64,000 nucleotides of DNA from Macrostomum lignano (Eukaryota): positions 62,001 to 126,000 of the forward strand of contig NIVC01000458.1 in assembly GCA_002269645.1 (NCBI GenBank), in the 5' to 3' direction. The notes beneath the pieces were generated by a model. The model was not told where the DNA came from and ran no database searches. It saw only the letters and a list, made by a program, of their open reading frames with translations. How positions within the stretch are numbered: the stretch's first letter is position 1; each line of letters opens with the position of its first letter. This document shows positions 6,139-55,499 of the stretch, piece by piece. A program made the position numbers and the translations under genes.

Positions 6139-7164
6139 TAAGTCAATAATTTCACAATGAGCAAGCTTATGGTAGCAAAATTTGGTCAATTTTAAAACCT
6201 TATATATCTAGCCTTATAAGGAATTGTGGTGGTAGTCTTGCTGAAAAAAGTATAGCTATAAAAGTTCACAGGGCCATTAAGGATAATCTTCAAAATTCAA
6301 AATTTAATAGAATTGTACTAAAATAGTTGAAGATTTGTTACAAGTGTACCTCCTTTTTTGCTTTTTCTAGAACAAGTTTTCTTTTTTCTTTTTGTTTCAT
6401 TGTAAGGTATAAGGTTGTCTGAATGCTCTCTTTTCAGATACACATGTGCCAACAACTGTCTTTGATCAAGAGGCCATTTTTTCTGCCCTCCTTTATGGAG
6501 GACTTCTCCAAACAGCTACCTGACATTGAGGCCATTGTTACCAAACAGAAACAGCGACTCCTTAGCCTAAGCAATTCAGAGTGGGCAGATTTTCAGTTTG
6601 TTAATCGCTTCTTCTTTGTTTTGGATGCTAACATTTCTGAATTGGAAGGCACACAGACTTTTGAAGAATCTGAGCAGGTAAATTACTGTTTCTCCATCAA
6701 GTTACTAACTGTGCTTGTTTCTTTTAAACATTAAACATTAAACATTTATCGATATTTTATTGTAAAAAAGCAGCCTGTGCAGCCCTTTCTATGTATGTGA
6801 TTACTTCCCCTATGATATTCACCATAGTTTTTCAATTAGCAGTTCATTAATATCGGTGAACAGAAACGACAGTCCTTATAGATTTAAATGTGAAATCGTA
6901 AAACAAAGCTGATTTTTTGTGGGGAGAAATTTGGCTTGCAAAAACTCTCCATTGTCGCTTTAAGCTACTTATTTGAAGATAACAACACGAAAGATGACCT
7001 CACTGCAAATCCCGCGGAAACCCTCGCACCTCGCCCATTGTGGTTGTGGCTGTAAACGACAACTTTCGGGTCGTCATCCGTCTGAGGCACGATGAGAGAA
7101 CTTCTGATCCTGAGCAGCATGTCATCAACAAGAATGTCATTAACATTTAACCAATCCAAGAGGC

Positions 7165-10100
7165 TGACACCTACACTTGATCAGTCCAAGAGACCCACAT
7201 CAACACTTGATCAGTCCAAGAGACCCACATCAACACTTGATCAGTCCAAGAGACCCACATCAACACTTGATCAGTCCAAGAGACCGACATCAACACTTGA
7301 TCAGTCCCAGATATTCACATCAACACTTGATCAGTCCAAGAGACCGACATCAACACTTGATCAGTCCAAGAGACCGACATCAACACTTGATCAGTCCCAG
7401 AGATTCACATCAACACTTGATCAGTCCAAGAGACCGACATCAACACTTGATCAGTCCAAGAGACCGACATCAGCACTTGATCAGTCCAAGAGACCGACAT
7501 CAACACTTGATCAGTCCAAGAGACCGACATCAACACTTGATCAGTCCAAGAGATTCACATCAACACTTATCAGTCCAAGAGACCGACATCAACACTTGAT
7601 CAGTCCAAGAGACCGACATCAACACTTGATCAGTCCCAGAGATTCACATCAACACTTGATCAGTCCAAGAGACCGACATCAACACTTGATCAGTCCAAGA
7701 GACCCACATCAACACTTGATCAGTCCCAGATATTCACATCAACACTTGATCAGTCCAAGAGACCGACATCAACACTTGATCAGTCCAAGAGACCGACATC
7801 AACACTTGATCAGTCCCAGAGATTCACATCAACACTTGATCAGTCCAAGAGACCGACATCAACACTTGATCAGTCCCAGAGATTCACATCAACACTTGAT
7901 CAGTCCCAGAGATTCACATCAACACTTGATCAGTCCAAGAGACCGACATCAACACTTGATCAGTCCAAGAGATTCACATCAACACTTGATCAGTCCAAGA
8001 GACCGACATCAACACTTGATCAGTCCAAGAGACCCACATCAACACTTGATCAGTCCAAGAGACCGACATCAACACTTGATCAGTCCAAGAGACCGACATC
8101 AACACTTGATCAGTTCCAGAGATTCACATCAACACTTGATCAGTCCAAGAGACCGACATCAACACTTGATCAGTCCCAGAGATTCACATCAACACTTGAT
8201 CAGTCCAGAGATTCACATCAACACTTGATCAGTCCAAGTGACCGACATCAACACTTGATCAGTCCAAGAGATTCACATCAACACTTGATCAGTCCAAGAG
8301 ACCGACATCAACACTTGATCAGTCCCAGAGATTCACATCAACACTTGATCAGTCCCAGAGATTCACATCAACACTTGATCAGTCCAAGAGACCGACATCA
8401 ACACTTGATCAGTCCAAGAGACCCACATCAACACTTGATCAGTCCCAGAGATTCACATCAACACTTGATCAGTCCAAGAGACCGACATCAACACTTGATC
8501 AGTCCAAGAGACCGACATCAACACTTGATCAGTCCCAGAGATTCACATCAACACTTGATCAGTCCAAGAGACCGACATCAACACTTGATCAGTCCCAGAG
8601 ATTCACATCAACACTTGATCAGTCCAGAGATTCACATCAACACTTGATCAGTCCAAGTGACCGACATCAACACTTGATCAGTCCAAGAGATTCACATCAA
8701 CACTTGATCAGTCCAAGAGACCGACATCAACACTTGATCAGTCCAGAGATTCACATCAACACTTGATCAGTCCCAGAGATTCACATCAACACTTGATCAG
8801 TCCAAGTGACCGACATCAACACTTGATCAGTCCAAGAGATTCACATCAACACTTGATCAGTCCAAGAGACCGACATCAACACTTGATCAGTCCCAGAGAT
8901 TCACATCAACACTTGATCAGTCCAAGAGACCGACATCAACACTTGATCAGTCCCAGAGATTCACATCAACACTTGATCAGTCCAAGAGACCGACATCAAC
9001 ACTTGATCAGTCCCAGAGATTCACATCAACACTTGATCAGTCCAAGAGACCGACATCAACACTTGATCAGTCCAAGAGACCGACATCAACACTTGATCAG
9101 TCCCAGAGATTCACATCAACACTTGATCAGTCCAAGAGACCGACATCAACACTTGATCAGTCCAGAGATTCACATCAACACTTGATCAGTCCAGAGATTC
9201 ACATCAACACTTGATCAGTCCAAGTGACCGACATCAACACTTGATCAGTCCAAGAGATTCACATCAACACTTGATCAGTCCAAGAGACCGACATCAACAC
9301 TTGATCAGTCCAAGAGATTCACATCAACACTTGATCAGTCCAAGAGACCGACATCAACACTTGATCAGTCCAGAGATTCACATCAACACTTGATCAGTCC
9401 CAGAGATTCACATCAACACTTGATCAGTCCAAGTGACCGACATCAACACTTGATCAGTCCAAGAGATTCACATCAACACTTGATCAGTCCAAGAGACCGA
9501 CATCAACACTTGATCAGTCCCAGAGATTCACATCAACACTTGATCAGTCCAGAGATTCACATCAACACTTGATCAGTCCAAGTGACCGACATCAACACTT
9601 GATCAGTCCAAGAGATTCACATCAACACTTGATCAGTCCAAGAGACCGACATCAACACTTGATCAGTCCAAGAGACCGACATCAACACTTGATCAGTCCA
9701 AGAGACCGACATCAACACTTGATCAGTCCCAGATATTCACATCAACACTTGATCAGTCCAAGAGACCGACATCAACACTTGATCAGTCCAAGAGACCGAC
9801 ATCAACACTTGATCAGTCCCAGAGATTCACATCAACACTTGATCAGTCCAAGAGACCGACATCAACACTTGATCAGTCCCAGAGATTCACATCAACACTT
9901 GATCAGTCCCAGAGATTCACATCAACACTTGATCAGTCCAAGAGACCGACATCAACACTTGATCAGTACCAGATATTCACATCAACACTTGATCAGTCCA
10001 AGAGACCGACATCAACACTTGATCAGTCCCAGAGATTCACATCAACACTTGATCAGTCCCAGAGATTCACATCAACACTTGATCAGTCCCAGAGATTCAC

Positions 10101-10680
10101 ATCAACACTTGATCAGTCCAAGAGACCGACATCAAACTTGATCAGTCCCAGAGATTCACATCAACACTTGATCAGTCCAAGTGACCGACATCAACACTTG
10201 ATCAGTCCAAGAGATTCACATCAACACTTGATCAGTCCAAGAGACCGACATCAACACTTGATCAGTCCAAGAGACCGACATCAACACTTGATCAGTCCAA
10301 GAGACCGACATCAACACTTGATCAGTCCAAGAGACCGACATCAAAACTTGATCAGTCCCAGAGATTCACATCAACACTTGATCAGTCCAAGAGACCGACA
10401 TCAACACTTGATCAGTCCAAGAGACCGACATCAACACTTGACCAGTCCAAGAGACCGACATCAACACTTGACCAGTCCAAGAGACCGACATCAACACTTG
10501 ACCAGTCCAAGAGACCGACATCAACACTTGACCAGTCCAAGAGACCGACATCAACACTTGACCAGTCCAAGAGACCGACATCAACACTTGATCAGTCTAA
10601 GAGACGTTCACAGAACTTACGTTCGCATCAACACTCGATTAGTCCAAGAGTCCGACATCAAAACTTGATCTATTGACCAG
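7165..10680. repeat. 30-bp tandem satellite (~115 units), consensus ACATCAACACTTGATCAGTCCAAGAGACCG
   Basis: Directly visible. A few recurring variants, no unique spacers; occasional 29-bp units explain the frame switches between the HQHLISPRD and STLDQSKRP ORFs. Confidence 0.98.
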
Positions 10681-11299
10681 TCCAAGAGACGGAAAGAGAT
10701 GAGAGAGTCACAGCTCTGTCAATATCGATTCTCGATTGTAGACAAAGACTGATTGTGTATTTAGCTAGTTTAATATTCCTTTCTGGTGCATACTTCTTTA
10801 ATTTAAGGAAAAGTGAATAAACAAGGTTTAAAGATAGCTGAATAAAGATATTTTTACAAAATTATCTGCCTTGATAAAACGAGCTTTACGAAGTCCCGAT
10901 AACATCAGTAGCTATAATTACCAGTGTGTAAAATCCGGTCATTCATGTACCATGTGTCACAACACCATTTTTGAAAATTCCATCGGATAACGAAAACTCA
11001 GAGGAGACATCACAAGCAGCTCGCATACACACACAAGAGGCGATAAAAAGAAGGGAAACAAGCAAAGTCTGGAAAGCAAACCACTCATTCAGACGACTTC
11101 AGTCCAGGGTTAAATATGTTATCAAAGGAGCAAAATTCTCTTCTTGCACGAGTTTTTAGAACGGAAGAAAATACTATTCGACAGCTTCTCCAACATCGGC
11201 GAAGGCAGTCGAAGGAAGAAGACCTCTTGGCAGGAGATTAACGTTTTGCACTGCAGTGGATACAAAGAGCTGAGCTAATGACTCCGCACACTCGTGGCA

Positions 11300-12125
11300 T
11301 AACGTGGAAAAATCTGCAGAGTGCAACTATAAAGAAAGTGGACAATAGTAAGTAGATGGTGTTGGATGAGACTGTTCTGAATATAGTGACCAATTAACCT
11401 ATTTCAAGTGACCAATTGCTCTTTCCACAATGCTACGGGTACGACGATGAGCTGCATTAATCTGTTTCTGACAGGAGACAGGAGGAATCAGCCATTGCAA
11501 GCATGGATAAATCGAGTTGCCTAGCAACGTGCAACTCGGGAAATAGCGAAATCGCTGAAAGCTGTCAAACAAGATAGTGTTCCAAAAAACCTGTGCATCG
11601 TTCACACATCCTGGCCAGGATGCATTCACATAGAAGAGGTGATGCTGCAGTCCGAAAGCAAGCATGAGATTCAACGAGTGTTCCCCTTTCGGTCTACAAA
11701 TCGCACCTCATCCTCACGTTATGTTGACTAATGTTCCATCCAATGCGCCACATACCTAAGGCACTTCACCGATGTTATTGAAGTTTACCACTGCATAGGT
11801 TCTCTACGTTGTTGATTGGCCATTTTTCAGTATCTTGGAATAGTGTTTCATTAATTACATAGGTGGCTCGTTTCACTACTTGGCAGCTTGCGGCCTTAGA
11901 AGGTCGATGAGCGTCCCCAACACAAATACAAATTAGTAGCGTAGAAGCGCAATGTGGTTAAAATTTGCTAACTCGATGTCAATGCACAACTGTGTCATGT
12001 TGGATGCGTCGATAACGGACCAATTTGGTGCTCAAGCTCGTCATAGGTATTCTAATTCAGTCTAAATCGTTCTACGAAGTCGCTATCATTGTCAAGAACA
12101 ATGCTCAGGCTCCTCTTTGATATTC
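11300..12125 (-). pseudogene. PIF/Harbinger (HARBI1-like, DDE_Tnp_4) transposase pseudogene
   Basis: Minus-strand pieces DSDFVERFRLN*, QILTTLRFYAT, VCGALDGTLV, FVDRKG..SLNLM, YVNASWPGCVNDAQVF, LLGNSIYPCLQWLIPP, INAAHRRTRSIVERAIGHLK reproduce the Harbinger nuclease motifs in order, with stops and frameshifts. Confidence 0.9.
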
Positions 12126-12245
12126 CACAACTGTACCAAATCTAGAGAAAGTAACTTTTTACTGATTTTAGCCGACGCATTTTAACCAGTGTTTGATTGT
12201 TGGAAGTTTCGTATCGTAAAATCATATCTACCCTGTTTTTTGTCT

Positions 12246-13040
12246 ATGGCTTCTCTAATTTACTGCGACATTGTATTTTCATTTGCCCATCTACAGGCCC
12301 TCTGTCCGGTTTCGTCGAATCCGACCAACCTATCGACGACCCATCGAGTGACGCGCAATTTATGGGACGCAGCGATATTTCTATTCGGCGATATTGACAG
12401 AAGCATTCACTCCGCCGTTGACGACATTGCGTCGGAGTTCACGCCCAGCCTAGCGTGTCAGTTGCACTCCATCGTGTGCCGAGACCTGCTGCCCAACCCT
12501 GGAAGTTACCGCCTTAGACCGGCTCGGCCAGCGAATGAACCGGACTTTTACTACGCTCCACCAGAAGAGATTTCAGATCGTCTAAACGTTCTATTTGCTA
12601 ATTGTCGTGCCGCTATTCGATCTGATAGCAGCCTGTTGGAGACTGTACACCTGGCAGCTAGCTTTATCGAACAGTACCTGGCCATACATCCATTCAGCGA
12701 TGGCAACGGTAGAACTGCCAGATTATTATGCGCTCTGCTGTTGCGACCGCTACTGCTCGAACCTGTGTCCATCTGTCTGGCCAGTTCTCAGTCCAGAGAT
12801 ATCTTCTTGCGATGTCTACGCGAGGCCCGCGGTCCCGGCGGCCATGTAGGCTTGTTAACTGCCTACTTATTGGCGTCAGTGGACAGGGCTGTGACCAGCT
12901 GGATCGAGTGGCTATATTGTTGTTCTAGAAATCAGGAACTATCACTGGTGGATGATGATGCTGCTGATGTTGAAAACGGAAAAGATGGCTCATTGTTTGG
13001 TGCAGCCGTTGCAAACCGTGCTCTATTCTGTTATAGCTAA
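12246..13040 (+). CDS. Fic-domain protein 1 (putative AMPylase); 5' end uncertain
   Basis: Open frame with canonical HPFSDGNGRTAR, preceded by LHSIV...PGSYR and followed by RDIFLRCLREA. First ATG at 12246; a polypyrimidine+CAG near 12297 could instead be a splice acceptor for an upstream exon. Confidence 0.85.
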   Translation: MASLIYCDIVFSFAHLQALCPVSSNPTNLSTTHRVTRNLWDAAIFLFGDIDRSIHSAVDDIASEFTPSLACQLHSIVCRDLLPNPGSYRLRPARPANEPDFYYAPPEEISDRLNVLFANCRAAIRSDSSLLETVHLAASFIEQYLAIHPFSDGNGRTARLLCALLLRPLLLEPVSICLASSQSRDIFLRCLREARGPGGHVGLLTAYLLASVDRAVTSWIEWLYCCSRNQELSLVDDDAADVENGKDGSLFGAAVANRALFCYS

Positions 13041-13894
13041 TTTTTTTATATTGTTTGGAAGTGTCTGTTGCTAATTTGTATGTATCATGTACAGTACTAT
13101 CAGCGTTTATTTTGTCAGTAAAGCCCCTGATTTGTCATTAACGCCCTTAAAGCATGGGTATTTAATTTACTACTCTGGCAGCAGAACTTGATTGGCTATT
13201 GTTGTGTGCAGTTTTATGTCAGTGGCCATAAGTTTAAAAATTCATGCAAATAGCATAAACCTTAGTCGAGTATTTTTAAACAGGAGTTTCCCATAGTGGC
13301 TGCTAGCAAAATGAATGAAGTCGACTCAGGAGTTAAAAGGAAAAGAGATGTAGCTCCTATCTGGTGAATTAGAATTCAATATATATTGACTTACTGGTAT
13401 ACTTTCATCAGTACGAACTAATGGCAATGGGCATGCACATTCACAACAAATTCCACAATTTTGTCCTGGATTTGCAAGCTCACTGCAGGCTTAAGTATGT
13501 ATACCGTGCTTTTGTTGAAACAACTGTCAAATATTGTCTTAATTGTATATATAGTATATTATGTAGTTGATAAATTTGTATCAAGTAAAATCGTACGGTA
13601 CCTAAATATACCTTACATGTTGTTTGAACAACAAAGTGTTTTTAGTTTGATTTCATTTGTGCTTATACGAACTATTAGCACCAGAGCGACCAAAAAATGT
13701 TAGCAGAATCCCTTCTCTATATAAAAAATGGGAATCTTGTGGTCACCTTCCTTGTAGCACTTTGGTAAAATTGGATCTACGAGTATATTGCCCTAACAGG
13801 CTATTTTAATTTTGTGTTCTAATCTTTTGGGTCTTGTTTTAAGTGTTCAGTGTTTGATTGTTAAAACCAAATAAGCGAGACCTTTTTTATTAGA

Positions 13895-14231
13895 GGCAGG
13901 GGGGTTGTGTGCACCCTGGCGCACTTTAAGCGACATAGGCACACAACCGGCGTGAGGCATTACTGCCCATTCCGCCGACTCTTCTGAGCAGGCATACAAG
14001 CGCGCAGATACGTACGCAGGCACACACTCACACAGGAGTGTACAGCGGCCCTAACTTTATATTATCGTTAGGCATGTACACTTCACTGCGCCTTGGGGGG
14101 TTGGCTCTCAAGGCCGTTAATTGCACGAGCAGAGCCAAGCCAAGACTTCAATTCAGCCCCAAATTAATGTGACTGCACTTGGAATCGAGCCTGGGTCACT
14201 GGCACATCAGAGCCTGCGCTAGACCGCTGGG
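13895..14231 (-). mobile_element. tRNA-derived SINE (family A), fullest copy in the window
   Basis: Minus strand begins GGGGCCGTAGCCCAGCGGTCTAGCGC...GGCTCGATTCC (Pol III A and B boxes). The body (GGCCGCTGTACACTCCTGTGTGAGTGTGTGCC) recurs near 20490-20530, 46318-46385, 57605-57770 and 58745-58880. Confidence 0.7.
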
Positions 14232-14609
14232 CTACGGCCCCCCAAAGCAAGACCATGCATTCGAATGATTCTCCCTGGTTGTGGTTCAAATCGGTGTTTC
14301 TTATCCAGCTAAGTTACAATGGTTGAGAAAGTCTCGAGAAGCCGAAGGTGGGAATCGGGATTCAATGATCGGATGAAGATTTTTCTTATCGAATCCTTTT
14401 CATTGTAAATTAAAGTTCTTTCATTGGCCAGAAGCAAAATCCTAACAGTTATATTCGGATGGAAAGTTGTTGGAGAATAGATGCATCACTTCAGTAATGT
14501 TAAGTAAATTTTGTATATAATTACGTATAGTGAGTAGTACATTGTTTTGTCTTTGTTTGCTGGTCTTTTAACATCTTAAACAGTTTCTTCCATCCATTTC
14601 AGCAGCCAG

Positions 14610-15596
14610 ATGTCCCGACAGCTGGAATTGCGAAAGCTGGACCATTTGGCCGTGACCTTTGACCATCGTCTGGACCCACTTCTACTACCTGACGAAACAA
14701 TAAAAGAATTGCTAGGCAATTTTGAGTACTTGGAAAACACGGTGCTATTAGCATCGCCGGATGAAATTGAATCTACCAGTATTGAATATCGGCGCTGTCT
14801 TAGCGATTCCGGGCAGAACTCAATTGAAAATGTGGCCAGACTTTATGCACTGCACGAAGTTCGTTCGTTTTCCGGTGGTCAATCTGTCACGATTGACGAC
14901 GCGTTCCTGATGCCTAGTGAAGCTGAGCAGTGTGATGCGAACGATTTGGCAGAAATTGAAAGTCTCCAGCGAGCTCTCCAGACCCTATTCGGCGTGGATT
15001 TGCGCTCGAAAATCGAAGTATCATTCGATGTTAACCTGGCGCATCGCGTTCACAAGTTGGTGATGCCGAACGCTCAAGACGCTGGGAATTTTCGTACATG
15101 CGATGCCGCGCCACGCGACTCAACCTTTCAGTACTTGAATTGGGAGCAGATACCTGCCGAATTAGAGGTGCTGTTCAACTACTGCTCAGAGCAATCAATG
15201 ACAACTCGCAACCGCGGAGACGCTTTCAAACTAGCTGCCGTGTTTCTAGAGCGCTTCCTACTCATTCATCCGTACAGAGATGGTAATGGCCGCACGAGCC
15301 GACTGCTCTGCTCGGCGCTTCTCATGCAAATGGACTGTATGAAGGTGCCATTGTTGTTTAACTTTGACAAACGGAGGAACTCCTCTGGATCGATGACCCT
15401 CTGTCGAGATCAGTATATGAGCGCGCTGCAAGGAGCCAGAGGTGCAATAGCATCGGACACCGTGCCACCGAACCTATTGGCCGCTTTTCTTGTTCTAGTC
15501 GGTGACAGGACTCTGCGCTCTTGGTCCGATTTGTTAGTTGTGGGCACGGAGCGGCAAAGGCATCGATCCAGCTCTCATAAGGAAGACGAGCAATGA
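14610..15596 (+). CDS. Fic-domain protein 2 (putative AMPylase), 328 aa, uninterrupted coding region
   Basis: Motif HPYRDGNGRTSR in Fic-core context (HRVHKLVM..DAGNFRT..IPAELEVLF..AAVFLERFLLIH; RDQYMSALQGA). No obvious TM segment or TPR upstream. An acceptor-like TTTCAGCAG just before the ATG suggests an intron upstream of this exon. Confidence 0.9.
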   Translation: MSRQLELRKLDHLAVTFDHRLDPLLLPDETIKELLGNFEYLENTVLLASPDEIESTSIEYRRCLSDSGQNSIENVARLYALHEVRSFSGGQSVTIDDAFLMPSEAEQCDANDLAEIESLQRALQTLFGVDLRSKIEVSFDVNLAHRVHKLVMPNAQDAGNFRTCDAAPRDSTFQYLNWEQIPAELEVLFNYCSEQSMTTRNRGDAFKLAAVFLERFLLIHPYRDGNGRTSRLLCSALLMQMDCMKVPLLFNFDKRRNSSGSMTLCRDQYMSALQGARGAIASDTVPPNLLAAFLVLVGDRTLRSWSDLLVVGTERQRHRSSSHKEDEQ

Positions 15597-15912
15597 GATT
15601 GCTTGGCTTGACTTAAATTTTTGCTAAGCGTTAAGCTAACAATCACAAAAAGTTACGGTTACATCAGGATGTAACAAGCTCTTAAATACAAAAAACACCG
15701 TCTTAATAGCGGAAGGCCATAAATCATCCATTAAGTGCTTCAAAATGTGGATTTTATATTTTGCCAATCCATTTTAAAGCGAAATCGGTACTTCAAATAA
15801 AATTGCAGATAGAACCAGTGTTATGCCCTGATACAATCGTAACGAACTTGTAGTGTCCTTGCGTCAAAATTTTAAGAAGCAATCGCCCAGAAATTTCTGG
15901 TATTCCATGAAG

Positions 15913-18132: not shown

Positions 18133-21100
18133 CTAAGCGTCCAGCTTAACTGCCGGGTGATTCTCCAACTGGGTCATATCTCTGAGCAGATCAGCCACTG
18201 TGAAGCGAAGTTGATGAAATTTTGACAGAGGAACCTGAAAAAATAGGCGAACTCTTGTTGAGTTTGGGGTTGTTGAGAGTTGGAAGAAAGCGAATGTACA
18301 TTATGATGAGGATTTGAAGAGAGACTTTACATTGCGGGTGAGGGTTGGAAGAGACGAGAGCCAGTGTACATTGTAGCTAGGTGAGAGTTGAATTGGAAGA
18401 GAATCCGTGTACATTACAGTATGGGCGAGGTTTAAAAGAGAGCCAGTGTACATTATGGGTGAGGGTTGGAAGAGCCAGTGTACATTATGGGTGAGGGTTG
18501 GAAGAGCCAGTGTACATTATGGGCATTATGGGTGAGGGTTGGAAGAGCCAGTGTACATTATGGGTGAGGGTTGGAAGAACCAGTGTACATTGTGGGTGAG
18601 GGTTGGAAAAGAGACCGTTTACATGTAAATTATGGGGTGAGGGTTGGAAGAGAGCCAGTATACATTATGAGTGAGAATTGGAGGAGAGACGGTGTACTTT
18701 GAGCGAGGGCTGGAAGGGAGCGAATGTACATGTAAATTGTGGGCAGAGGTTGAAAGAATTTGAAACCAGGCGGGGGCATGCTCCCCCAGTGAAAGCTATG
18801 GTAAGACATGCCAATGATTTGTCCCCCCAACCCCACCTAATTGCTTTGACCCGTTATGAAAATCAATAATTTTGCTTCAGGGCGACAGAACAGCGCCTGC
18901 GGCACCAAAAAGAGTGCCTGCGGCGCTAAAATAAGTGCCTGCGGCGCCAGAAAGAGTGCCTGCGACGCTAAAACGAGCGCTTACAACACCGATAATGTAC
19001 ATGTAGAAATTTAGTCATGTACATGCAGAATTTTTGGCTTTGTCCTCCCTCACTATAAAATCCATGGCGACGCCCCTGTCGGTTTCAATTGTGGTTGAAG
19101 ATTAAGTGTGAATATTGTGGTAGGTGAGAGAAAAAATCAGCCAACTCACTTCGAAGCAGTGCGGTGTGTCTCCTGTCCGAAAGCTGATGAACACAGTAGG
19201 CTCAAGAATTTTGCCGACCTTGCTAAAAATGGAATTTTTTTTGTTTTAAAGTAAAGTTAAACTACTTAAAGTAGCTAGCTTGAAAAATTTAAAAACAAAA
19301 ATACGAAACAACCGACAGACCTGGTGCAAATGTTCACGTCGATTTTCCAGGAAAACTCCTCCATTGGATCGCTGCGGGCGTCAATCTTTTTCGACTTGTC
19401 CACGGCGTCTAGAAAACTGAATAAGGATCAGAATCATTTGAATAGAGAGTTGACAGGGTTCATTGTATGAGTGTATGATCAAAATGAGCATTTGGATCTG
19501 CATCTAATAAAAAATGATCGCTTTATTTGAGCTAAGCGAGTGTTTGAGCAACTGTGGAATTCGGTGAACCCAGTGTTTATCTTTTGATATGTTGCGCCTT
19601 TCTTATAGCTCTATTGATATTTATAAAGCTTGTCGCTCAAAAAATTAAGAATTTTATGTCAATGGACTCTAACTTTCACTCTACAGAAGGGCAAAGACAC
19701 GCAATTTTTACACTTTGGAGTCTTGGTCAGAAATGCCCTGATATTCACGAAAACCTGACCCGCATTCACGGTCCCGACTCCCGATGCCATCAGTCGGCGA
19801 CAGTTTACAGGTGGATCGAACAGTGCGAGGCGGCCGGCAGTGAGTTGCCAACTTATCCAAAAGTTAGGGTCCATGGGTGGAACAAATCTTGCAGCTGCTG
19901 TCTTGCAACTCAGTGCTTGATCAGCTGTACTTGTGGCTTTCTTCTGAGTGAGCATAGAAGCACTATGCGGTGTGTATTTCTATGGCCAAGGGTATGTGAA
20001 CAAATACATGCTGCTTACAGCAGGAAGCACTTATAAAAATCGAATTTTCGTGGCATGAAAGCTAAAATAAGCCGCTAACTTTTAAGGCATATGATTTTTT
20101 AACACACATTAATACACCTTTTCACGCTCAATTCCGATCAAAGTCCAGTTTTAAAAAAACTAGCGGAAATTAAATAAAAACAAACCCCAGTTCAAAACAT
20201 TCTGTCCATTCTGCCACTGAAGCAAGGTTTAGCCATAGACAAAATTGTCCCCAGTCTGAACTGAATTTCCGCTAGTTTTTTCAGAACTGGACCCTGATCA
20301 AAATTGAACGTGAAAATGTGTACTCGTGGAAGCAAGCAAAAGTGACACTACTTCTGGGACACCACTCGTAATATGAAAGAAGTGAAAAATTCCTATCTCT
20401 GTAGTGTATTTTCGGTTAAAACCAGCCTCATAAACATTTTCTTAGAAACGTAGCTTCCCCGTGCTTCTCTACTTGAGTTGTCCTTGGCCTGACGATTAGA
20501 AAGTCAGGGCCGCCCTGTGTGAGCGCGTGCCTTGTATATTGGCTCTTGTATGTACTCAGGTCAATGTCACCTAAAGCGTTTCTGCAGATATTTACAGGAG
20601 CAGAAATTTCGGCAGAACTGACTAACCCAGCGTCAAATGCCATCTCCAGCAGGCCCTCGATCCAGGGCTCCGAGTATTTCAGCTGGCGCAGGTCGTCGCG
20701 CAGCCGATCTCGTTGGCGCAGCTTTGGCGGCAGGTCGCGAGTCAGACGGAACAGGCGGAGCAGGACGCCCAGAGCGTGCGCGCGCTTCTCACTGTCGGCT
20801 GGCGAGGCGGCGCCCGTGCAGATGCGCTGCAGCAGGGCCGGGTTCGGCTGGCCAGCGCACAGCTTTGCCGCAGCTGCCAGGTTGGCAATGAGGTTCGGTC
20901 AGTGCGACATGGGGTCAGATAAGGTTGGGTTTTGATGAAGCTAATGCGGCTGAATCTGGACAAACAACGGGTGCCAAATATTTGTGTGTTTTTTTCATGC
21001 ATTTTTCAGGGTCACGCCAGTGTGGGATACTCTGTAAGGTCAGGTCAGATACTGCCTATTTTCCAGCTACTTGAGACTGTCAGGTCATGGGTGTCAGTTT

Positions 21101-22739: not shown

Positions 22740-30119
<7,380 letters not shown>

Positions 30120-31755: not shown

Positions 31756-33504
31756 TCAGTCCAAAGCCTCTGCCGCAAGTGGCCGCAGCGGTTGATCCAG
31801 TCTCTGCTGCCGCAGCCGCCGAAGCTTGGCGCGATGCTGTGAGGCCAGCGCCAGACCCAGCACCAGGTTGCTAAGCAACAGTGGGCAGGCCAGCACCAGC
31901 GACTGCACAGGGACTCCGCCAGATAAGAAGCCGACCAGCGGAGCCAATGCTGACCCGGAGCGCAAGCTGAAAACACACAGCCCGAGTCCGGTGCTGCGCA
32001 GCTCAGTCGGGAAGAACTCGGAGCTCAGCGCCACCAACAGGCTGAAGGCGGCCGAACTGCAGAAGCAGCCAACGACGCCCAGGCCGGCCAGAAGAATCGA
32101 CCAGTCGGGTAAGAAGTGAGCAACGCCGCCGAAAGCGAGGCAAGCCAGCGCGGAGAGCAGGCCGCAGGCGATGAGACCTCTCCGTCTGGGAATGATGTTG
32201 AGCACAAATGCGTAAGGCAGCTGGGTGGCGCCGAGCACTACCGCGTACAGGCACACGTTGGGGATGATTCGGCTGAGCACGAAGTAGAATCCGACGCAGT
32301 TGAGTCCCAGACAGAGGCCGTGCAGGCCCAGGATGCTCAGCGGTCGAAGCAGAGCGCAAGCCACTCGGCGAATCCTTGTTACCAAGCCAGCTTTTTTGCT
32401 GCTGTTTTCGCTGCTTTGCTTGTCTTTGTGTTCGTCCATTTCGGTTTCGTCTGAAGCTACAGCGGGGGCAGCAACGACAGCCTCGATAGCGGCTGATGCT
32501 GCTGTCCGCGAAGGGACGGTCTCACCGTTGATCAAGGCGATGCGACGCAGGGCGGCCTCAGCGGCGGCGTGGCGACCGCGGGCGGCGAGCCAGACGGGAC
32601 TCTCGGGCAAGCAGAGGCCCAGCAGTAGCAGGGAGGGCGCGGCTGTGCAGCAGCTGAACAGAACATAGAGCTGATGGTGGCGAGTGGCCCAGGCCAAGCC
32701 GCCCGCCGCCAGGGTGCCCACGGAGATTCCGGTGCTCCAGGCGGCGATGAAACGGCTGCGGTGGGAGTCACTGGAATTCGATAAAGGGTTCAGAGCTCGG
32801 GGTGAGAATCAGGGCTAGTGTGGGACATTTCTGAGGCCTCGAGGTTCGATTCATCCAGAGGTGGCACCCGAAATGTACCAAATGCTACAAACACGGGACT
32901 GCAGCCATGCAGGTGTTGTAAACAGGACTGCTGGGCGATCCAAGAGTGACAAGGGCTCTCGTTGAAACATTATCTACACTACTGTCGTCAGTAGCACAGT
33001 AGGAACGCACTAGATTTGCGCTTATAAGTATTGCGCTACTCACGAGTGCAGCTCGCAGCCGTAGACTTGCATGGCGCACTGGGCCGGCATCAGGCAGCAT
33101 CCGGCCACGCAGCGAGCCGCCAAATGTAGCGCCAAATTTGGCGCGTAATTGCTAGCTAAGCTGGCTAAGACTAGCAACGCTTGGCCAATCAGAGAGCAGC
33201 GAGCTCGGCCGATTGCGTCAGAGGCCGGGCCACCTAACAGGGAGCCCACAATGGTGCCGGCGAAGAAGGCCACGTTAGTAAGGTCGCCGGTCTGCCTCTG
33301 GCACAGGCCGTACTGCTGGCTGATGGACGACAGGAACTCATCGTTGTCAATTTGGTCGGCTTCTAGGAAAGAGCCGTTGACGCCGTCGCTGCAGTTGTAG
33401 GGCAGCAGGTTGAGAAACATGCCGCTGAGGGTGATCAGCGTGGCGTAAACCATCGTGAGAAAGCCCAGGCCGCAGATGGCGGCGTGGAAGCGACCGAATT
33501 TCAT
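31756..33504 (-). CDS. MFS transporter, SLC22/organic cation transporter-like, paralog A; exons 33504-33044 and 32770-31756 (5' end may extend)
   Basis: Multiple TM helices, motif A (SDAIGRAR), LCLPESPVWLAARGR and SEFFPTELRSTG. Phase-2 GT-AG intron 32771-33043 joins ELHS|DSHRSRF. Confidence 0.88.
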
Positions 33505-39112: not shown

Positions 39113-41373
39113 TCAAGCCCGCACCTCAAACTCAATCTGCGAATGACCAACCGGGATAACCATCTTCTCCATAGGCGCCGAGGAGTCATTCTGACTATTA
39201 CTAGACTCATCTTTATCCTCATCGTTACCAAATAATCGACAGCCGAATTGGCGAGCGCAGCTGCCGCTCAAAGCGAGTCCCAGCGGCAGGGAGGAGAGCA
39301 GCAGAGGCCAGCCAAGCGCCATGGAGCGGAGCAGGGCTCCTGGCAGGTAGTTAATCAGCGGCGCTAATGTGGAGCCGCAGCGGAGGCAGAAGGCGCAGAC
39401 ACCCAGCCCGGTATTCCTGATGCGAATCGGATAACTTTCCGCGCTGACCGACACCAGCAGATTAAAAGCCGACGTTGAGCAAAAGCTGCCGAGGACGCCC
39501 AGGCCGGCTAGCAACGCGCCGCTCCAGCCGCCGCGAGCGAGCGAACCCTGCGGCAGGAAGTAAGCAGCGGCCCCGAAGCCAACGCTGACCAATCCGGACA
39601 GGACGCTGCAAGCCAGAAGGCCCGGCCGGCGAGGCACCAGGTTCAACAGGAAGAAACTGGGCACCTGGGTAGAGCCGAGCAGCACAGCGTAGAGACACAC
39701 ATCCGGTATGACGCCGCTCATGACAAAGTAGAAGCCGTAGCAGTTCATCCCGAGGCACACGCCGTGGAAGCCCAGCAGGCAGGCCAGTCGGAGAAGTCGG
39801 CAGTTCCAGCCGCTGCCGCCGCCGCCGCCGCCGCCGCTGCCGCCGCTTCCTGTCGCCATTGTCAAAGCCGGATTGGACGGCAGCAACGACGGCGTCCTCG
39901 ATGGTTGTCGATCATCCCCTGATCGGCGTCGACCGTTAATGACGTCGACGCGTTTCAGGGCGGCCAGCGATTCGTCCACTCGGCCGCGGGCGGCCAGCCA
40001 GGCCGGACTCTCCGGTAGCCAGAGCGCCAGCAGCAGGTTGACCGGCGCCAGGCAGCAGGAGACCAGCACGTACAGCTGGTGGTCTCTGGTCAGGTGCGCC
40101 AGCAGGCCGCAGCCCACTGTCCCGATGGAGACGCCGACGCTCCAGATAGCCAGGAAGCGGCCCTGATAACGCGAACTGTGCACCTCGCTGCCGTACACCT
40201 GTACATGCGAGGTTGAGGGAATGTCAGGTCATCCTAGCAGGATTGGTCATAAAAAATTATGGGCTAGGAGGGTGGTCATTCACTACTGTATGATCAGGGA
40301 ACATTGTCATTCACTACTATATGATCAGGGAACATTGTCATTCACTACTGTATGATAAGGGAACATTGGCATTCACTATGACCCGGGGGAATGGTTACCT
40401 AAAATGATCTTGGCGAATGGTCATCCACAATGACCAGGGAGAATGGTCACCCACAATGACCAGGGAGAATAGTCATTCACAATGACCAGGGAGAATGGTC
40501 ATCCACAATGACCCGGGAGAATGGTCACCCACAATGACCCCGGGAGAATAGTCATTCACAATGACCAGGGAGAATAGTCATCCACAATGACCAGGGAGAA
40601 TGGTCATCCACAATGACCAGGGAGAATGGTCACCCACAATGACCCGGGAGAATGGTCATCTACAATGACCCGGGAGAATGTTCATCCACTTTGATCCAGG
40701 ATAATGGTCATATACAATGACTCAGAACCCCGAGAGGAAGGTGAGCCTGGTGTAAGCACCAGCTGCCGACTTGAGCTACCTGAATGGCGCACTGAGCCAC
40801 CACCATGAAGCAGCCAGCCAGGCCCCGACAAGAGAGATGAAGCCACAAGCTGGGCGCGTAGTTGCTTGCCAAAGTGACCAAGGTGGCGACCACCACGCCG
40901 ACCACAATGCAGGGCTTCCGGCCGAGCCTGTCGGACACGGGGCCGGTCAGCAGCGAGCCTGCGATGGTGCCAAACATGTAGGCCACATTGGTGAGGTCCC
41001 CGGTCGCCCGGTCGCACAGACGGTATTGTCGACTCAGCGACGAACGAAAGCCCTGATGCTCCGACCACGACAGGCTCATGTCATCGTCCTCAGCGGTGAC
41101 GTCTCCGTCTGAGTCGGTCGCCCCCGCGGTGCAGTTGAACGGCCTGATGTTGAGAAACATGCCACTGAGAATCAACAGCGTGCTGTACAGGAGCACCATG
41201 AAACCCAGCAGGCAGGTCAGGGCGTGGAACCGGGTGAACTTCTCCAAGGACTCTTCCTTCTCGTCCATGCCGGGATCGTCGCGACCCGACTCCGCTGGTG
41301 GCGGCGGCGGCGGCGGCGGCGACAGAGCCTGCCGCTCATCCTCCGCAGCTGTGGAGGCTAAAACGTCAGTCAT
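39113..41373 (-). CDS. MFS transporter, SLC22-like, paralog B; exons 41373-40780 and 40198-39113, ~559 aa
   Basis: SDRLGRKP motif A, WLPESPAWLAARGR and AESYPIRIRNTG. Phase-0 intron 40199-40779 joins CAIQ|VYGSEVHS. Clearly paralogous to 31756-33504. Confidence 0.9.
40290..40690. repeat. ~26-bp minisatellite in the SLC22 paralog B intron
   Basis: ACAATGACCAGGGAGAATGGTCATCC units. Confidence 0.9.
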
Positions 41374-44216: not shown

Positions 44217-46712
44217 CTAGAAGCCGCCGCACAGCTGTTCGACGCCGAACGCGGCGTCCAGCAGTTGGCCGTCGCTGAACCTCCTGCCAACCAGCATAGT
44301 GCCGATGGGCAGCGGAGGCTCCCCGGCGGTGCGGCCGCAGTTCAGCGTGATGGCTGGATGCCCGCTGGCGTTGAACGCGGCCGTGTTGCCGATCATGCCA
44401 AGGCCGTGGTTGAACACTTCAACAACGCTGGCCGATTCGTCCAGAAGGCGAGGCGGTCGCATCGGCAGAGTCGGCATCAACAAATAGTCGACGCTATTTA
44501 GCGCGTTGTCATAGCAACGACGCAGCTCGCGTATCCAATTAGCCGCTTGGCTAAAGTGCTTCAATCCATAGTTACTGGAGAGAAACTCCGACATCAGCAT
44601 CACCACCTTGACGATGTGCTGATTGTCGGCAGGAAAAGTACGTCGACCTTTGAACGCGGCGTCGACAGCGTCGGGATCGACGTAGGCGTCGTCTAACGGC
44701 AAGGCGCCGTCGGTCAGGTAGGTGGCTCGGAAGCCGTGCAGCAGGTAGGGCAGGTAGAACGCGCCCGACTGGCTGTGCAGCGGCACCGACACCTTCGACA
44801 CTTTCGCACCGGCGCTTGCCAGCTTGCCGGCCAGCTGGCGGACGGCCTCGTCGACGTCCTCGTCGACACCGTGGAAGCCTTCGACAAGTAGGCCGAACGA
44901 ATATTTTGATAGTTCGCCGCGCAGCGACTCGGAGTAGTTGTCGACTCGCAGGTCGGTCGGCTGCCGGCGGTCGAGGCCGTCTCCGTCCAAGCCGGCGATG
45001 GTCTGCAGCAGGCGGGCCGCGTCCGTGACGGTGCGCGCCATCGGGCCCAGGTGGTCGATGCCGCGCATCATCGACAGCGCGCCGGTGTACGGCACCAAGC
45101 CAAATGTCGGCTTCAGTCCAACTATGCCGCACCAGGCGCTGGGGATTCGAATCGATCCGCCCTGATCCCCGCCGATCGCCATGTCAACTAGGCCCTTGGC
45201 AACCAGGTAGCCGCAGCCAGAGCTCGAACCGCCGGCCGAGTGCAGCTCCGAGTGCGGATTTGGCACCGCGCCTTTAAAGGTGGTGTGGCTTGCACCGCTG
45301 GAATTATAATGTAGGTTTTTGCGTAAACGATGAAATGCTTAAATCACTACTTACAGTAGTCTGAAAGACTATTCACCGTTAAATTTTGAATTGGAAGCAA
45401 CGAAAATTAAGTTGGATAGGAAATTTACGAAGTTTTTAAAAAACAATATTGAGGGTATTAGATGAGAACAATATTTAGTGGCCCAACAACTGAGGATCCG
45501 GGAGGCTGCTCCAGCAACTGAGGATCTGGGAGGCTGATTCAGCAACTGAGGATCTGGGAGGCTGATTCAGCAACTGAGGATCTGGGAGGCTGATTCAGCA
45601 ACTGAGGATCTGGGAGGCTGATTCAGCAACTGAGGATCTGGGAGGCTGATTCAGCAACTGGGGATCTGGGAGGCTGATTCAGCAACTGAGGATCTGGGAG
45701 GCTGATTCAGCAACTGAGGATTTGGGAAGGCCAGCAACTGAGGATTTGGGAAGGCCAGCAACTGAGGATTTGGGAAGGCCAGCAACTGAGGATCTGGGAG
45801 GCTGGTCCATAACTGAGGATCTGGGAGGCTGCCCAAGCCGCACCTGAAGCACATGTCCTCGCAGACGGCCTTGCCAACAATCCGGCCGCCAGCAGCCAGA
45901 ATTCTGGTGACCACGGTGGCATCTTCGGTGGGCACGAAGCCCTCCAGCAGCTTGGAGCCGTTCATCATGGGTACCCCAGCCACGCTGACACTGTCCTTCA
46001 GGGCCAGGGTTTTGCCGGCAAGCGGCAGGCTGCTGTCCTGGGCCGCCGCCGGGTCCTTCAGGTCGCAGCGCCAGTACCAGGCATTGCCCGGATTGTCCGC
46101 GGCGCTGGCCCGCTGCCCGCAGCTCCTTGGCGGCACCGGCTGCGAGGCGACTGTCGACGTTGAAGATCGCATAGGATTTTCCAGTCTGTCGGGTTGTGGG
46201 GATATTGAAAATCTGTTAAAAAATCCATATTCGCGGGAAGTACTGTGGGGCACTCTGGCGTAACGCCTTCGGCAACATCGCCCCACAACCAGCGCTGACG
46301 GCAATTCTGTGGGAATGACAAGGCCGCTGTACACCCTGTGTGAGCGTGTGCCTGCTTAAGGGGTCATCGGAATGGGCACAACGGCTTGCCTGCTTGCTGG
46401 TTAAGATTCAAATTTCGCCTTGATCTGGCCCAACGCCAAAAAGAAGCCTGAAACAAACAACTGATAGACATGCTACAAACATTGACACATCAGCAATCAC
46501 CTATCCAAAGAAGTGAGCGAGGCTGAGAGCTGGCCAATAAGCTCCTTGTAGGCTGTCAGCTCGTCATCGCTAGAACTGAAGCCGAACCGGTCAGATAAGC
46601 GCCGGAGCTCCTGCAGAGACGGCTGACGAAAAGCCTGACGGCTGTACAGCGACAGGTGGCGGCAGGCGGCGGTGGCGGGGCGGAGCGAGGTAAGTCGGCG
46701 AACAGCTTGCAT
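44217..46712 (-). CDS. Amidase-signature family enzyme; exons 46712-46501, 46185-45844, 45297-44217; ~544 aa
   Basis: Ser-cisSer-Lys triad motifs [26 protein letters not shown] and [16 protein letters not shown], plus NPGNAWY and [11 protein letters not shown] across the splice junction. Phases 2/2 are consistent (1635 nt). The N-terminus is Arg-rich and acid-free. Confidence 0.92.
45485..45835. repeat. 28-bp minisatellite in amidase intron 2
   Basis: CAGCAACTGAGGATCTGGGAGGCTGATT units, starting a few nt after the donor on the minus strand. Confidence 0.96.
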
Positions 46713-50002: not shown

Positions 50003-50497
50003 TCACGCAAACGCCAATCCAATAAAGAAGCCGCCAACAAAAGTGGTGCCGAAGCAGGCATTGGGGCCCGCCAAAAAATGGCGCGCTCTGTCTAGCAGGC
50101 CGCCGCCACCGCGGGCCCCGCCGCCCCCCATAGCGCCGGCCGCAGCGGCAACCTCCGCCTCCTGTACAAACTGGCGTCCCAGCTGATTCAACCGGGTCCA
50201 ATTCACCGTTACAACTCCGCGCTGTTGAGCAATCTGCAGACAGATGATGCCGCCGCCAAGCACCAAAGCGGCTGTGCGGCCCACCCGCCCAACCAGGTAG
50301 CCTGTCAGGCAGCCGCCCGCGCCACCGATCATCGCCTGCTGGCCGGGCGTGGCGTCAGCCAGCCTGCGAGAGGCTTCGGCGGCTGCCGTAGCCAGCTGAC
50401 TGCCCACACCGCCGGAGCCGTCGCTGCTGCCGCTGCCTCCCGCTGAGTCCGACGCCGACGGCGGCGAGAGCAACTCGTCGGCCGGATCGGCCGCCTC
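50003..50497 (-). CDS. FUN14-domain mitochondrial outer-membrane protein (FUNDC1/2-like), terminal coding exon; upstream exon not resolved
   Basis: QAMIGGAGGCLTGYLVGRVGRTAALVLGGGIICLQIAQQRGVVTVNW and FGTTFVGGFFIGLA match the FUN14 pattern. The acceptor CAG lies directly after the 33-bp array. Confidence 0.85.
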   Translation of the reverse strand, partial: EAADPADELLSPPSASDSAGGSGSSDGSGGVGSQLATAAAEASRRLADATPGQQAMIGGAGGCLTGYLVGRVGRTAALVLGGGIICLQIAQQRGVVTVNWTRLNQLGRQFVQEAEVAAAAGAMGGGGARGGGGLLDRARHFLAGPNACFGTTFVGGFFIGLAFA

Positions 50498-50504
50498 CTG
50501 ACCG

Positions 50505-51330
50505 GAGTGTGGCTGAGTCTGCAGTGTTGGGTTTGCACAGCGTGGCTGAGTCTGTAGTGTTGAGTTTGCACAGTGTGGCTGAGTCTGCAGTGTTGGGTTT
50601 GCACAGTGTGGCTGAGTCTGCAGTGTTGGGTTTGCACAGTGTGGCTGAGTCTGCAGTGTTGGGTTTGCACAGTGTGGCTGAGTCTGCAGTGTTGGGTTTG
50701 CACAGTGTGGCTGAGTCTGCAGTGTTGGGTTTGCACAGCGTGGCTGAGTCTGTAGTGTTGAGTTTGCACAGTGTGGCTGAGTCTGCAGTGTTGGGTTTGC
50801 ACAGCGTGGCTGAGTCTGTAGTGTTGGGTTTGCACAGCGTGGCTGAGTCTGCAGTGTTGAGTTTGCACAGTGTGGCTGAGTCTGCAGTGTTGGGTTTGCA
50901 CAGCGTGGCTGAGTCTGTAGTGTTGAGTTTGCACAGTGTGGCTGAGTCTGCAGTGTTGGGTTTGCACAGTGTGGCTGAGTCTGCAGTGTTGGGTTTGCAC
51001 AGCGTGGCTGAGTCTGTAGTGTTGGGTTTGCACAGCGTGGCTGAGTCTGTAGTGTTGGGTTTGCACAGCGTGGCTGAGTCTGTAGTGTTGGGTTTGCACA
51101 GTGTGGCTGAGTCTGCAGTGTTGGGTTTGCACAGTGTGGCTGAGTCTGCAGTGTTGGGTTTGCACAGTGTGGCTGAGTCTGCAGTGTTGGGTTTGCACAG
51201 CGTGGCTGAGTCTGTAGTGTTGGGTTTGCACAGCGTGGCTGAGTCTGTAGTGTTGGGTTTGCACAGCGTGGCTGAGTCTGCAGTGTTGGGTTTGCACAGT
51301 GTGGCTGAGTCTGCAGTGTTGGGTTTGCAT
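50505..51330. repeat. 33-bp minisatellite abutting the FUNDC acceptor
   Basis: GCACAGTGTGGCTGAGTCTGCAGTGTTGGGTTT units. Confidence 0.97.
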
Positions 51331-51927
51331 TACATTTTACATTTTGCAATACATTTTAGAAATGCAAACTACAACGAAGCAAATAAAAGCAAGAATTTAG
51401 AAAATTTGTGCAAAACATAACGCACAGAAAAATGTATATTTGAAAGTCTAAATTAAAACTACTGCAATGGTTAGCAAAATTTTTAAACTAATGATTAGTA
51501 CATATTTGAGCTAAGTTAAGCTGCTTTAGATCGAGTGAAAACTAACATGCAGAAACGATTGACCGCACTCACACAGATACAAAAATTGCATTGCAAACTT
51601 TATAAAGAACTTGGATTTAAGTAACTCTTCGAAAATTATTTGCTAGTTTGATGCGGACCTTAATCAACTGGCAAAATAGATTAAAGATTGAATTATAAAA
51701 CAGTTAATGATGTAAAAATACTGCAGTTGCATTATTGCAATTAAATGTTTGAGAAGCCCGGCTAAAAACAGACAGACTCGAACTAAACTGAAAAAAATTA
51801 ATTAAAAACTATAAAATACTTTCAATTGCACAAAAGCGAGACAGCAAAATTGTTAGAGATTGTTATTTGGATAAAATCCATCTTGAAATTAACTTTTTCA
51901 GAGATCCCTTGAATTGAATGACAGCGA

Positions 51928-54082: not shown

Positions 54083-54869
54083 AACCCCTTGGGTTGTAGC
54101 TTTCAGCAGAAAGCCAAACGCAAACAAACGAATAAGTACACTTTTCTGTAACTATTGGCTGGTTTAAGTTGCTTAGTTTGTTTGCTTTTGTTCCCCACCG
54201 AGTTTTTTTGCCGTTGTGCTGGTTTTTTGTTGATAAATTTCTTATTCTCGGTTCCACTCCAGATGCTAATTATAGAACTCCTTGGCTGGATTCTCCCACT
54301 AAAAATTGAATTGCTTGCCACTAGGCCAATTGGCTTGGAAAATGCTCTTCGATATCATTATCTACACATGCAGTTGTCAGTTCGAATTTTGAGGTCCGCA
54401 GACACAAGCAAAATGATTGGTGATCGAATCAAGTTCCTAGTTCATTATTGAACTTATCGAATAATGAAACCGGATTAGGTGAATCAGCTGGTACACTGGA
54501 GATTGAGCAGGCACAACAAACTTATACATATATACGCGCTTCACCTTGTAATCGATATGGGCAATATATCAATCAAATCAGAACATCCGAAGCTTCAATT
54601 GAAAGAATTGGGTAAAATTAAATTTTATAAATAAAGGGAAGCATATTTAAACAGGGATAATACTGTTTTCTATTATATTTTACCCAGCCAATATCAGACT
54701 ACTCGCGGGTCAGTTGAATAAAGTTGAATACAAGCTAACTGGCCTGAATACTGTATGACATCCTTCTTCCCATCAGTACAGGATGGAGCATCTTGGGCTT
54801 GCTCTTCATCAATTTGAGGAGCACCAGCACCATCTGCTTCCCACTCTCTGCTGCCGCCTCCACCTCCGT

Positions 54870-55445: not shown

Positions 55446-55499
55446 TATCGTCTATCTTCCTCTCCTTCCCCGCCTATCTCCCTCTCTCCATCTCCCTCT

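Follow-up and report, generated by a model that had tools for sequence, protein, structure and literature searches.

The stretch of DNA analyzed here, hereafter the window, comprises 64,000 nucleotides of the flatworm Macrostomum lignano (GenBank assembly GCA_002269645.1, contig NIVC01000458.1, positions 62,001 to 126,000 of the forward strand) and carries two neighboring genes for Fic-domain proteins, designated Fic1 and Fic2. The open reading frames (ORFs) at 12189-13040 and 14610-15596 matched the Pfam Fic domain PF02661 with E values of 4e-16 and 2e-15 (60.1 and 57.8 bits, respectively, with a gathering score of 24 bits). Both genes lie on the plus strand, with 1,569 bp from the Fic1 stop codon (13040) to the Fic2 ATG (14610), and their products share 33% identity over 187 amino acids (aa). 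The original prediction, made from the sequence, of two co-oriented, intact and diverged Fic ORFs about 1.6 kb apart was correct, including the translation of their motifs, and such a co-oriented pair with intact motifs is far beyond chance; the feature is real. The DNA is that of M. lignano: Fic2 is 100% identical to the annotated protein P0316 and Fic1 to P0317 (PAA82702.1), with identities of 99.4% between Fic2 and PAA92673.1 (P0001) and 97.1% between Fic1 and PAA92674.1 (P0002). The features of the pair are as follows.

6436-6437, plus strand: probable spliced leader (SL) trans-splice acceptor, AG of TTTCAG, immediately 5' of the Fic1 mRNA model
6444-6677, plus strand: Fic1 exon 1 (coding sequence), N-terminal helices and inhibitory-helix-type segment; alternative ATG at 6495
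6639-6641, plus strand: Fic1 codon GAA for the family-invariant Glu (P0002 E61), candidate inhibitory or regulatory residue (...ANISELEGTQT...)
6678-12296, plus strand: Fic1 intron, 5.6 kb, phase 0, GT...AG
12297-13040, plus strand: Fic1 exon 2, coding for the Fic core plus C-terminal helices, stop codon included
12687-12722, plus strand: Fic1 catalytic motif HPFSDGNGRTAR, full fit to HxFx(D/E)GNGRxxR
14601-14602, plus strand: probable SL trans-splice acceptor, AG of TTTCAG, 7 nt before the Fic2 ATG
14610-15596, plus strand: Fic2 coding sequence, single exon, 328 aa
14868-14891, plus strand: Fic2 loop FSGGQSVT at the inhibitory-Glu position, no acidic residue (MAFFT and AlphaFold2 [AF2] model)
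15267-15302, plus strand: Fic2 catalytic motif HPYRDGNGRTSR, conservative change of Phe to Tyr at position 3
15796-15801, plus strand: first AATAAA/ATTAAA hexamer after the Fic2 stop codon (motif scan)

The GenBank annotation of M. lignano (Mlig_3_7) was derived from RNA sequencing together with mapped trans-splice and poly(A) sites, with genes being cut at trans-splice sites (PMC5730564), and therefore expression of both Fic1 and Fic2 is implied by their gene models. The longest Fic1 mRNA model (P0317) starts at 6438, directly after CTCTTTTCAG, and has its first ATG at 6444, while for Fic2 the models (P0001 and P0316) begin with "SQM..." at 14604, after CCATTTCAG; judged by sequence, both 5' ends are probable SL trans-splice acceptors. 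The first exon of Fic1 was found by tblastn, with P0002 aa 1-74 matching 6459-6680, and is joined to exon 2 through the donor CAG/GTAAAT at 6677/6678 and the acceptor TCTACAG/GCC at 12296/12297. The stretch 12189-12296 of the plus-strand ORF 12189-13040 is intron read-through, and the originally assumed Fic1 start at 12246 had to be given up in favor of a gene made up of exon 1 from 6444 (or 6495), the intron and exon 2. The start was taken as ATG 6444 (giving 325 aa) because the residues between this ATG and that at 6495 include RPFF, which aligns with an aromatic pair conserved in the protein family defined below (kvWW in its hidden Markov model [HMM], RPWF in P0122 and NPYF in P0003). The greater part of the Fic1 intron consists of a 30-bp minisatellite (7155-10605; ∼115 copies, 90% matches, consensus TCCAAGAGACCGACATCAACACTTGATCAG, Tandem Repeats Finder), which yields long spurious ORFs (HLISPRDRHQ repeats) and is shorter by ∼2 kb in L089, the homeologous copy; the intron also holds a PIF/Harbinger-type transposase fragment at 11399-11674 on the minus strand (Pfam DDE_Tnp_4, E value of 4.7e-9).

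The neighbors of the pair in the window are ordinary animal genes (a COMM-domain gene, a MYRF-like gene, major facilitator superfamily [MFS] transporters, an amidase and FUN14). The tandem pair is annotated intact on three Mlig_3_7 contigs (700, 241 and 177 kb), and the accession numbers of Fic1 and Fic2 are adjacent wherever both genes of a copy carry one; such a set of homeologous copies fits a neopolyploid genome. The window is colinear with L089 (NIVC01000042.1), with 92 to 97% identity in noncoding DNA and coding identities of 100% for Fic1 exon 1 (within flanks of ∼92%), 97.7% for Fic1 exon 2 and 99.4% for Fic2, and with zero indels in the Fic coding regions. The dN/dS values between these two copies were 0.36 for Fic1 exon 2 (9 nonsynonymous and 8 synonymous substitutions) and 0.15 for Fic2 (2 and 4, respectively), suggesting purifying selection on both genes in direction, with small counts. 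The intron, the animal neighbors and the three copies in the polyploid assembly bear out the earlier assumption that these are animal genes.

Fic was the sole domain in either protein at E values of ≤0.1, and Pfam detected no tetratricopeptide repeats (TPRs) in Fic1 or Fic2. Similarly, no transmembrane (TM) helix was found, the Kyte-Doolittle maxima over 19 residues at the N terminus being 0.56 (Fic1) and 0.41 (Fic2) and the hydropathy of the 17-aa Fic1 extension from ATG 6444 being ∼0.36 (hand calculation). The lack of TM and TPR segments that had been proposed for both genes is thus upheld by Pfam and hydropathy, and the upstream exon of Fic1 adds neither. Judged from these sequences, neither protein would have a membrane anchor or signal peptide, and both are most likely soluble and cytosolic or nuclear. 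The AF2 models had predicted local distance difference test (pLDDT) values of 84.9 (Fic1) and 75.9 (Fic2), and for both the best matches among Protein Data Bank structures in Foldseek were the class II Fic proteins BT_2513, FICD and SoFic, with template-modeling scores of 0.57 to 0.66 over about 270 to 300 columns. The models predict a class-II-like fold for both proteins, in which regulatory helices at the N terminus pack against the Fic core.

Like the bacterial class II proteins (BT_2513/3cuc, SoFic and CdFic), the flatworm proteins are of similar size and combine, in one polypeptide, the Fic core with a putative intramolecular N-terminal regulatory helix, and 3cuc (BT_2513) was the best Foldseek match for Fic1 (TMt of 0.75). 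Unlike them, they show only 19 to 26% identity and have a family-specific motif in place of the canonical SNAIEGN; moreover, the family occurs in eukaryotic and giant-virus-like contexts, and Fic1 has gained an intron and SL trans-splicing. With FICD/HYPE (the BiP AMPylase/deAMPylase; FIC-1 in Caenorhabditis elegans and Fic in Drosophila) they share a Fic core of the type HPFxDGNGRxxR preceded by N-terminal helices, a template-modeling score of about 0.6, and, by profile, human FICD as the best solved-structure match (92.7 bits). In contrast to FICD, which resides within the endoplasmic reticulum (ER) lumen, the flatworm pair is predicted to be soluble, without TM anchor or TPRs, at about 17 to 20% identity and in a separate clade, and where FICD reads TVAIEG, Fic1 reads ISELEG, the family [VI][SGT]E..P, and Fic2 has no Glu. 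In the viral library, the best structural matches were WSSV wsv406 (E value of 7e-6) and a FIC-like protein of the Oryctes rhinoceros nudivirus (E value of 2e-4), which are likewise short, single-domain and invertebrate-associated, but which show only ∼20% identity and are likened to the flatworm proteins by structure.

When 1.84 billion cluster representatives were searched exhaustively with a profile, 196 proteins were returned at E values of ≤1e-30, and it was this search that brought the family to light. A word-indexed search with Fic2 returned only its own M. lignano cluster, and one with a family alignment, capped at 8,000 candidates, yielded few members. The family (short eukaryote/giant-virus Fic) is defined operationally, with an HMM built without the flatworm proteins, and its members are single-domain Fic proteins of about 260 to 340 aa. 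On this HMM, Fic1 scored 188 bits and Fic2 155 bits, while phage and bacterial Fic proteins reached at most 105 bits. On the family profile, the FICD of Timema scored 86 bits, compared with >200 bits for members. In a neighbor-joining tree, the family received bootstrap values of 90 to 92% and the flatworm clade 88 to 89%; FICD (human and Timema) was placed among the bacterial class II proteins as a clade of its own (100%), and monophyly of the family with FICD received 0%. On this sequence evidence, Fic1 and Fic2 are not FICD orthologues and belong to a separate family, in line with the earlier reading of the pair as noncanonical, which the lack of TM and TPR segments also favors. Khater and Mohanty distinguished four eukaryotic Fic/Doc groups (Basidiomycota; Dictyostelium, plants and fungi; metazoan FICD; fungal Doc-like), and their account presents none of the four as a TM-less family of animals or giant viruses. 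The literature yielded nothing on these gene identifiers, on Macrostomum AMPylation or on "Fic domain" combined with "giant virus," and the database names of these proteins are only "hypothetical" or "Fido domain-containing."

The flatworm clade consists of Fic1, Fic2, P0003 and P0122, with Fic2 as its deepest member on the longest branch. P0003 is a third, intronless M. lignano paralogue on another contig, and P0122 is probably from an animal, as it adjoins a Bcl-2-family gene on its contig. Another member, P0175 (KAF2895358.1), is from the click beetle Ignelater luminosus (PMC10816139) and is encoded by an intronless gene on a 275-kb contig among genes for arginyl-tRNA synthetase, a leucine-rich repeat (LRR) protein and UFSP2. 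Its grouping with the flatworm clade was unsupported (26%), and a single ancient animal origin and separate transfers are indistinguishable in the tree. The flatworm copies are an expansion specific to this lineage, within a family of patchy distribution, and this, as had been suggested, fits horizontal acquisition.

Several members lie on long, dense contigs with ORF coverage of 72 to 94%, compared with 23 to 41% for the animal loci. These contigs are rich in ORFans and encode zf-MYND, RING, Skp1, kinesin, DnaJ, OTU, LRR, ankyrin, Lon, FtsJ and dUTPase proteins, a content that suggests a giant-virus-like nature. One of them, L007, is a 93-kb IMG/VR viral contig whose Fic protein scored 212 bits and was the sole true member in the IMG/VR scan, which otherwise gave mostly phage and prophage Fic proteins (≤105 bits). 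The Mimivirus early-promoter motif AAAATTGA was ∼2.5-fold enriched on L007 and L093, with no enrichment on L004, L005 and L091, and hints weakly at an origin of the contigs in Imitervirales. L093 (7180-9485, adjacent) and L005 (5235-6200 and 12128-13102, about 6 kb apart) carry two Fic genes each, of which one per pair belongs to the family and the other is of a distant type (45 and 73 bits, respectively). The member P0005 adjoins a protein kinase gene on a contig mislabeled "archaeon." On L002 (GCA_004146225.1, SDYO01001269.1), a member labeled "archaeon" (RYH05706.1) lies beside a eukaryote-type protein kinase ORF, and the bin of this metagenome-assembled genome probably contains eukaryotic or viral DNA.

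Within the catalytic motif, Fic2 keeps the His, the Asp, Gly-Asn-Gly and both Arg residues, and its Tyr at position 3 recurs in 5 of the 150 family members. The metal-binding Asp is replaced by Asn (HPFxNGNGR) in 106 of these 150 (∼70%; e.g., P0130, P0127 and the protein encoded at 7659-8582 of L007) and is kept in the flatworm copies, P0004 and P0005. In P0122, Lys replaces the last Arg of the motif.

Upstream of the core, one Glu was present in 130 of the 132 nongapped sequences in an alignment of the best 150 family members, within the segment Y[LI]REVW[VI][SGT]E. In Fic1 this segment reads FVLDANISELEGTQT, where ISELEG contains the invariant Glu and, two residues on, E-G. The family HMM aligns Fic1 (FVLDANISE), P0003 and P0122 through the segment, with the Glu in the "YlrevwvgE" column, and the residue is also found in the beetle protein and in giant-virus-like members; in the AF2 model of Fic1, it lies in the loop after helix 39-58. 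When alignments were dominated by bacterial class II proteins, the column of the canonical SNAIEGN Glu fell on Fic1 E63, and hhalign paired Fic1 G64-T65 with the canonical N-T after E-G. As aligned, the register of the family Glu relative to FICD E234 appears uncertain by 1 to 3 residues, and Fic1 has a Glu at both candidate positions. The original prediction had left Fic1 without an inhibitory region unless an upstream exon existed; that exon exists and encodes the region.

At the inhibitory-helix position, Fic2 reads HEVRSFSGGQSVTIDD, without Glu, and its loop plus flanks, VRSFSGGQSVTI, contains zero Asp or Glu residues whatever the alignment register. MAFFT placed the Glu column at S88 (alignment A2) or S88/G90 (alignment A1) of Fic2, and the AF2 model has helix 66-86, loop 87-94 and helix 95-98, with the same topology as Fic1. 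In HMMER, the match of Fic2 to the family profile begins at residue 97, leaving residues 1-96 unaligned, and the Glu-less sequence is common to all three copies. Loss of the inhibitory Glu in Fic2 is thus supported by sequence and predicted structure, so that its proposed absence from the pair stands for Fic2 and falls for Fic1. STSIEY and NSIEN, earlier noted as near-matches in Fic2, were rejected as inhibitory motifs because the helices that contain them (50-63 and 66-86) precede the equivalent loop.

Considering these results, we propose, with a probability of roughly 60%, that the pair are soluble class-II-type AMPylases, of which Fic1 is autoinhibited and Fic2 is naturally de-repressed or otherwise regulated. 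Fic1 and Fic2 would be expressed and selectively maintained paralogues of a non-FICD, single-domain Fic family that is otherwise found mostly on giant-virus-like and protist-like contigs, and the pair would have arisen by duplication in the flatworm lineage. Both retain all catalytic residues that would be needed for nucleotidyl (AMP) transfer and may therefore act as protein AMPylases. By analogy with class II proteins and FICD, contact of the N-terminal Glu of Fic1 with the second motif Arg would prevent ATP from binding productively, so that Fic1 would be autoinhibited and might be bifunctional, as AMPylase and deAMPylase. Fic2 would have replaced this Glu and remodeled ∼96 N-terminal residues, which are partly disordered in the prediction, and may be constitutively active or under other control. 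A Glu-less genotype with an intact motif gives constitutive activity in E-to-G mutants and in effector Fic enzymes. In having Ser/Gly for Glu and an intact motif, Fic2 resembles FICD E234G, FIC-1 E274G and SoFic E73G as well as the naturally Glu-less VopS and IbpA, but it is a natural, conserved animal gene rather than a mutant or a secreted effector, and its N-terminal region has diverged throughout.

Several points weigh against this proposal. Given the Asn in most members, the ancestral chemistry of the family may not be AMPylation. The family Glu can be equated only tentatively with the canonical inhibitory Glu: in the HMMER alignment, the family S/T falls on T230 of FICD and the family Glu on the next residue, three before E234, with low posterior probability; the hhalign alignments of the family with class II and FICD profiles end just downstream of the Glu segment and leave the register unfixed; and the family motif [VI][SGT]E..P is unlike (S/T)xxxE(G/N), with position 1 in Fic1 not being S/T. 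In addition, the N terminus of Fic2 is modeled at low confidence (pLDDT of <50 for residues 1-47), the tree was built by simple neighbor joining with 100 bootstraps, and the dN/dS values rest on just 17 (Fic1 exon 2) and 6 (Fic2) substitutions.

An alternative, which we consider rather unlikely, is that the pair forms a writer/eraser or toxin/antidote-like module, in which Fic2 is a constitutive AMPylase and Fic1 its deAMPylase or, as a heterodimer partner, its trans-inhibitor, both being kept adjacent and perhaps cotranscribed. The same Glu is required for deAMPylation in FICD and in the Enterococcus faecalis Fic protein, which speaks for such a module, as do the tandem order retained in all three assembly copies and the paired Fic genes on the giant-virus-like contigs L093 and L005; however, the second gene of each of those pairs falls outside the family, and the third paralogue P0003 is solitary. 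Cotranscription would be favored by the SL-type acceptors at both mRNA starts and by the spacer (13041-14602), whose sole AATAAA/ATTAAA hexamer, at 14409, lies 1.37 kb past the Fic1 stop codon, so that SL trans-splicing of a single polycistronic precursor may give rise to both mRNAs; against a shared precursor, the annotation assigns Fic1 and Fic2 different transcriptional-unit names. A class-I-type antitoxin ORF (VbhT/VbhA type) in the spacer was also considered and rejected: the six frames of its 1,562 bp gave only two (S/T)xxxE(G/N) matches, none in an ORF of ≥50 aa, with ∼2 to 3 expected by chance (rough estimate).

A comparably doubtful alternative holds that Fic2 is compromised or neofunctionalised, either as a pseudoenzyme or as an enzyme of phosphocholination, UMPylation or GMPylation, with the loss of Glu reflecting relaxed or changed function. 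Its branch is the longest in the flatworm clade, its motif has changed from Phe to Tyr, its N terminus is unalignable to the family, and the Asn of most relatives hints at noncanonical chemistry. Nevertheless, all of the His, Asp, Gly-Asn-Gly and Arg residues of the Fic2 motif are intact, the Tyr is not private to it, and Fic2 shows the stronger purifying signal of the pair, with copies that are 99.4 to 100% identical.

Far less probable is that Fic1 and Fic2 are divergent orthologues of FICD with TM and TPR exons that were overlooked. Although human FICD is the top solved-structure match to the family profile, this reading is already contradicted by RNA-based models that begin at trans-splice acceptors located 7 nt before the ATG, by intronless homologues of 259 to 282 aa (P0003, P0122 and the beetle P0175) that start at the same position, and by the tree and the profile score of the Timema FICD. 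A contaminant of bacterial, viral or food-organism DNA, or dead insertions, can be dismissed as barely credible: the greatest abundance of the family is on giant-virus-like contigs from metagenomes, but Fic1 has a 5.6-kb spliceosomal intron with host repeats, the neighbor genes are animal, the three homeologous copies are colinear on contigs of 177 to 700 kb, and the ORFs are intact and RNA supported. Contamination, pseudogene and missed-exon readings were all rejected on context, intact ORFs, RNA-based models and the tree.

According to reviews, most metazoans possess a single Fic enzyme, the ER-resident FICD, and SelO is the only other metazoan AMPylase family (PMC8097203). The sequences indicate that some invertebrates have a second, non-FICD Fic lineage that includes a natural Glu-less paralogue. 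A second animal lineage of this kind, predicted to be soluble and without TM or TPR segments, would widen the sites of Fic-mediated AMPylation in animal cells, and Glu-less Fic2 would be the natural equivalent of the E234G mutant used across the field. M. lignano is tractable by transgenesis and RNA interference, which makes the question directly testable. Furthermore, the abundance of the family on giant-virus-like contigs points to unexplored viral use of Fic proteins and to gene exchange between viruses and eukaryotes. More speculatively, and in our view improbably, some invertebrates may possess a second AMPylation system, cytosolic and derived from giant viruses or from the protists that these infect, in which the Macrostomum pair would serve as writer (Fic2) and regulator or eraser (Fic1), an animal counterpart of Fic toxin/antitoxin logic possibly involved in defense or stress control. 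If Fic2 were a constitutive cytosolic AMPylase functionally paired with Fic1, the importance of the finding could be considerably greater.

Elsewhere in the window, the stretch 18436-18757, downstream of Fic2, is a compound tandem repeat (periods of 32, 41, 73 and 105 bp), a diverged form of which is present in L089. The MYRF-like gene has a large exon at 23915-25279 (plus strand) coding for the domains NDT80/PhoG (DNA binding), Peptidase_S74 (intramolecular chaperone) and MYRF ICA. Two MFS/sugar-transporter-like exons on the minus strand (31756-32721 and 39113-40198), ∼7 kb apart, are probably a tandem duplicate, and they are followed by the amidase exon (44217-45266) and the FUN14-domain ORF (50003-51349), both on the minus strand. 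Finally, long ORFs overlap on opposite strands at 54783-56393 (plus) and 55474-56910 (minus), where the GC skew is extreme (0.39 and then -0.44); with a weak His-rich, low-complexity match, the ORFs at 54783-56910 are probably repeat DNA rather than a gene.

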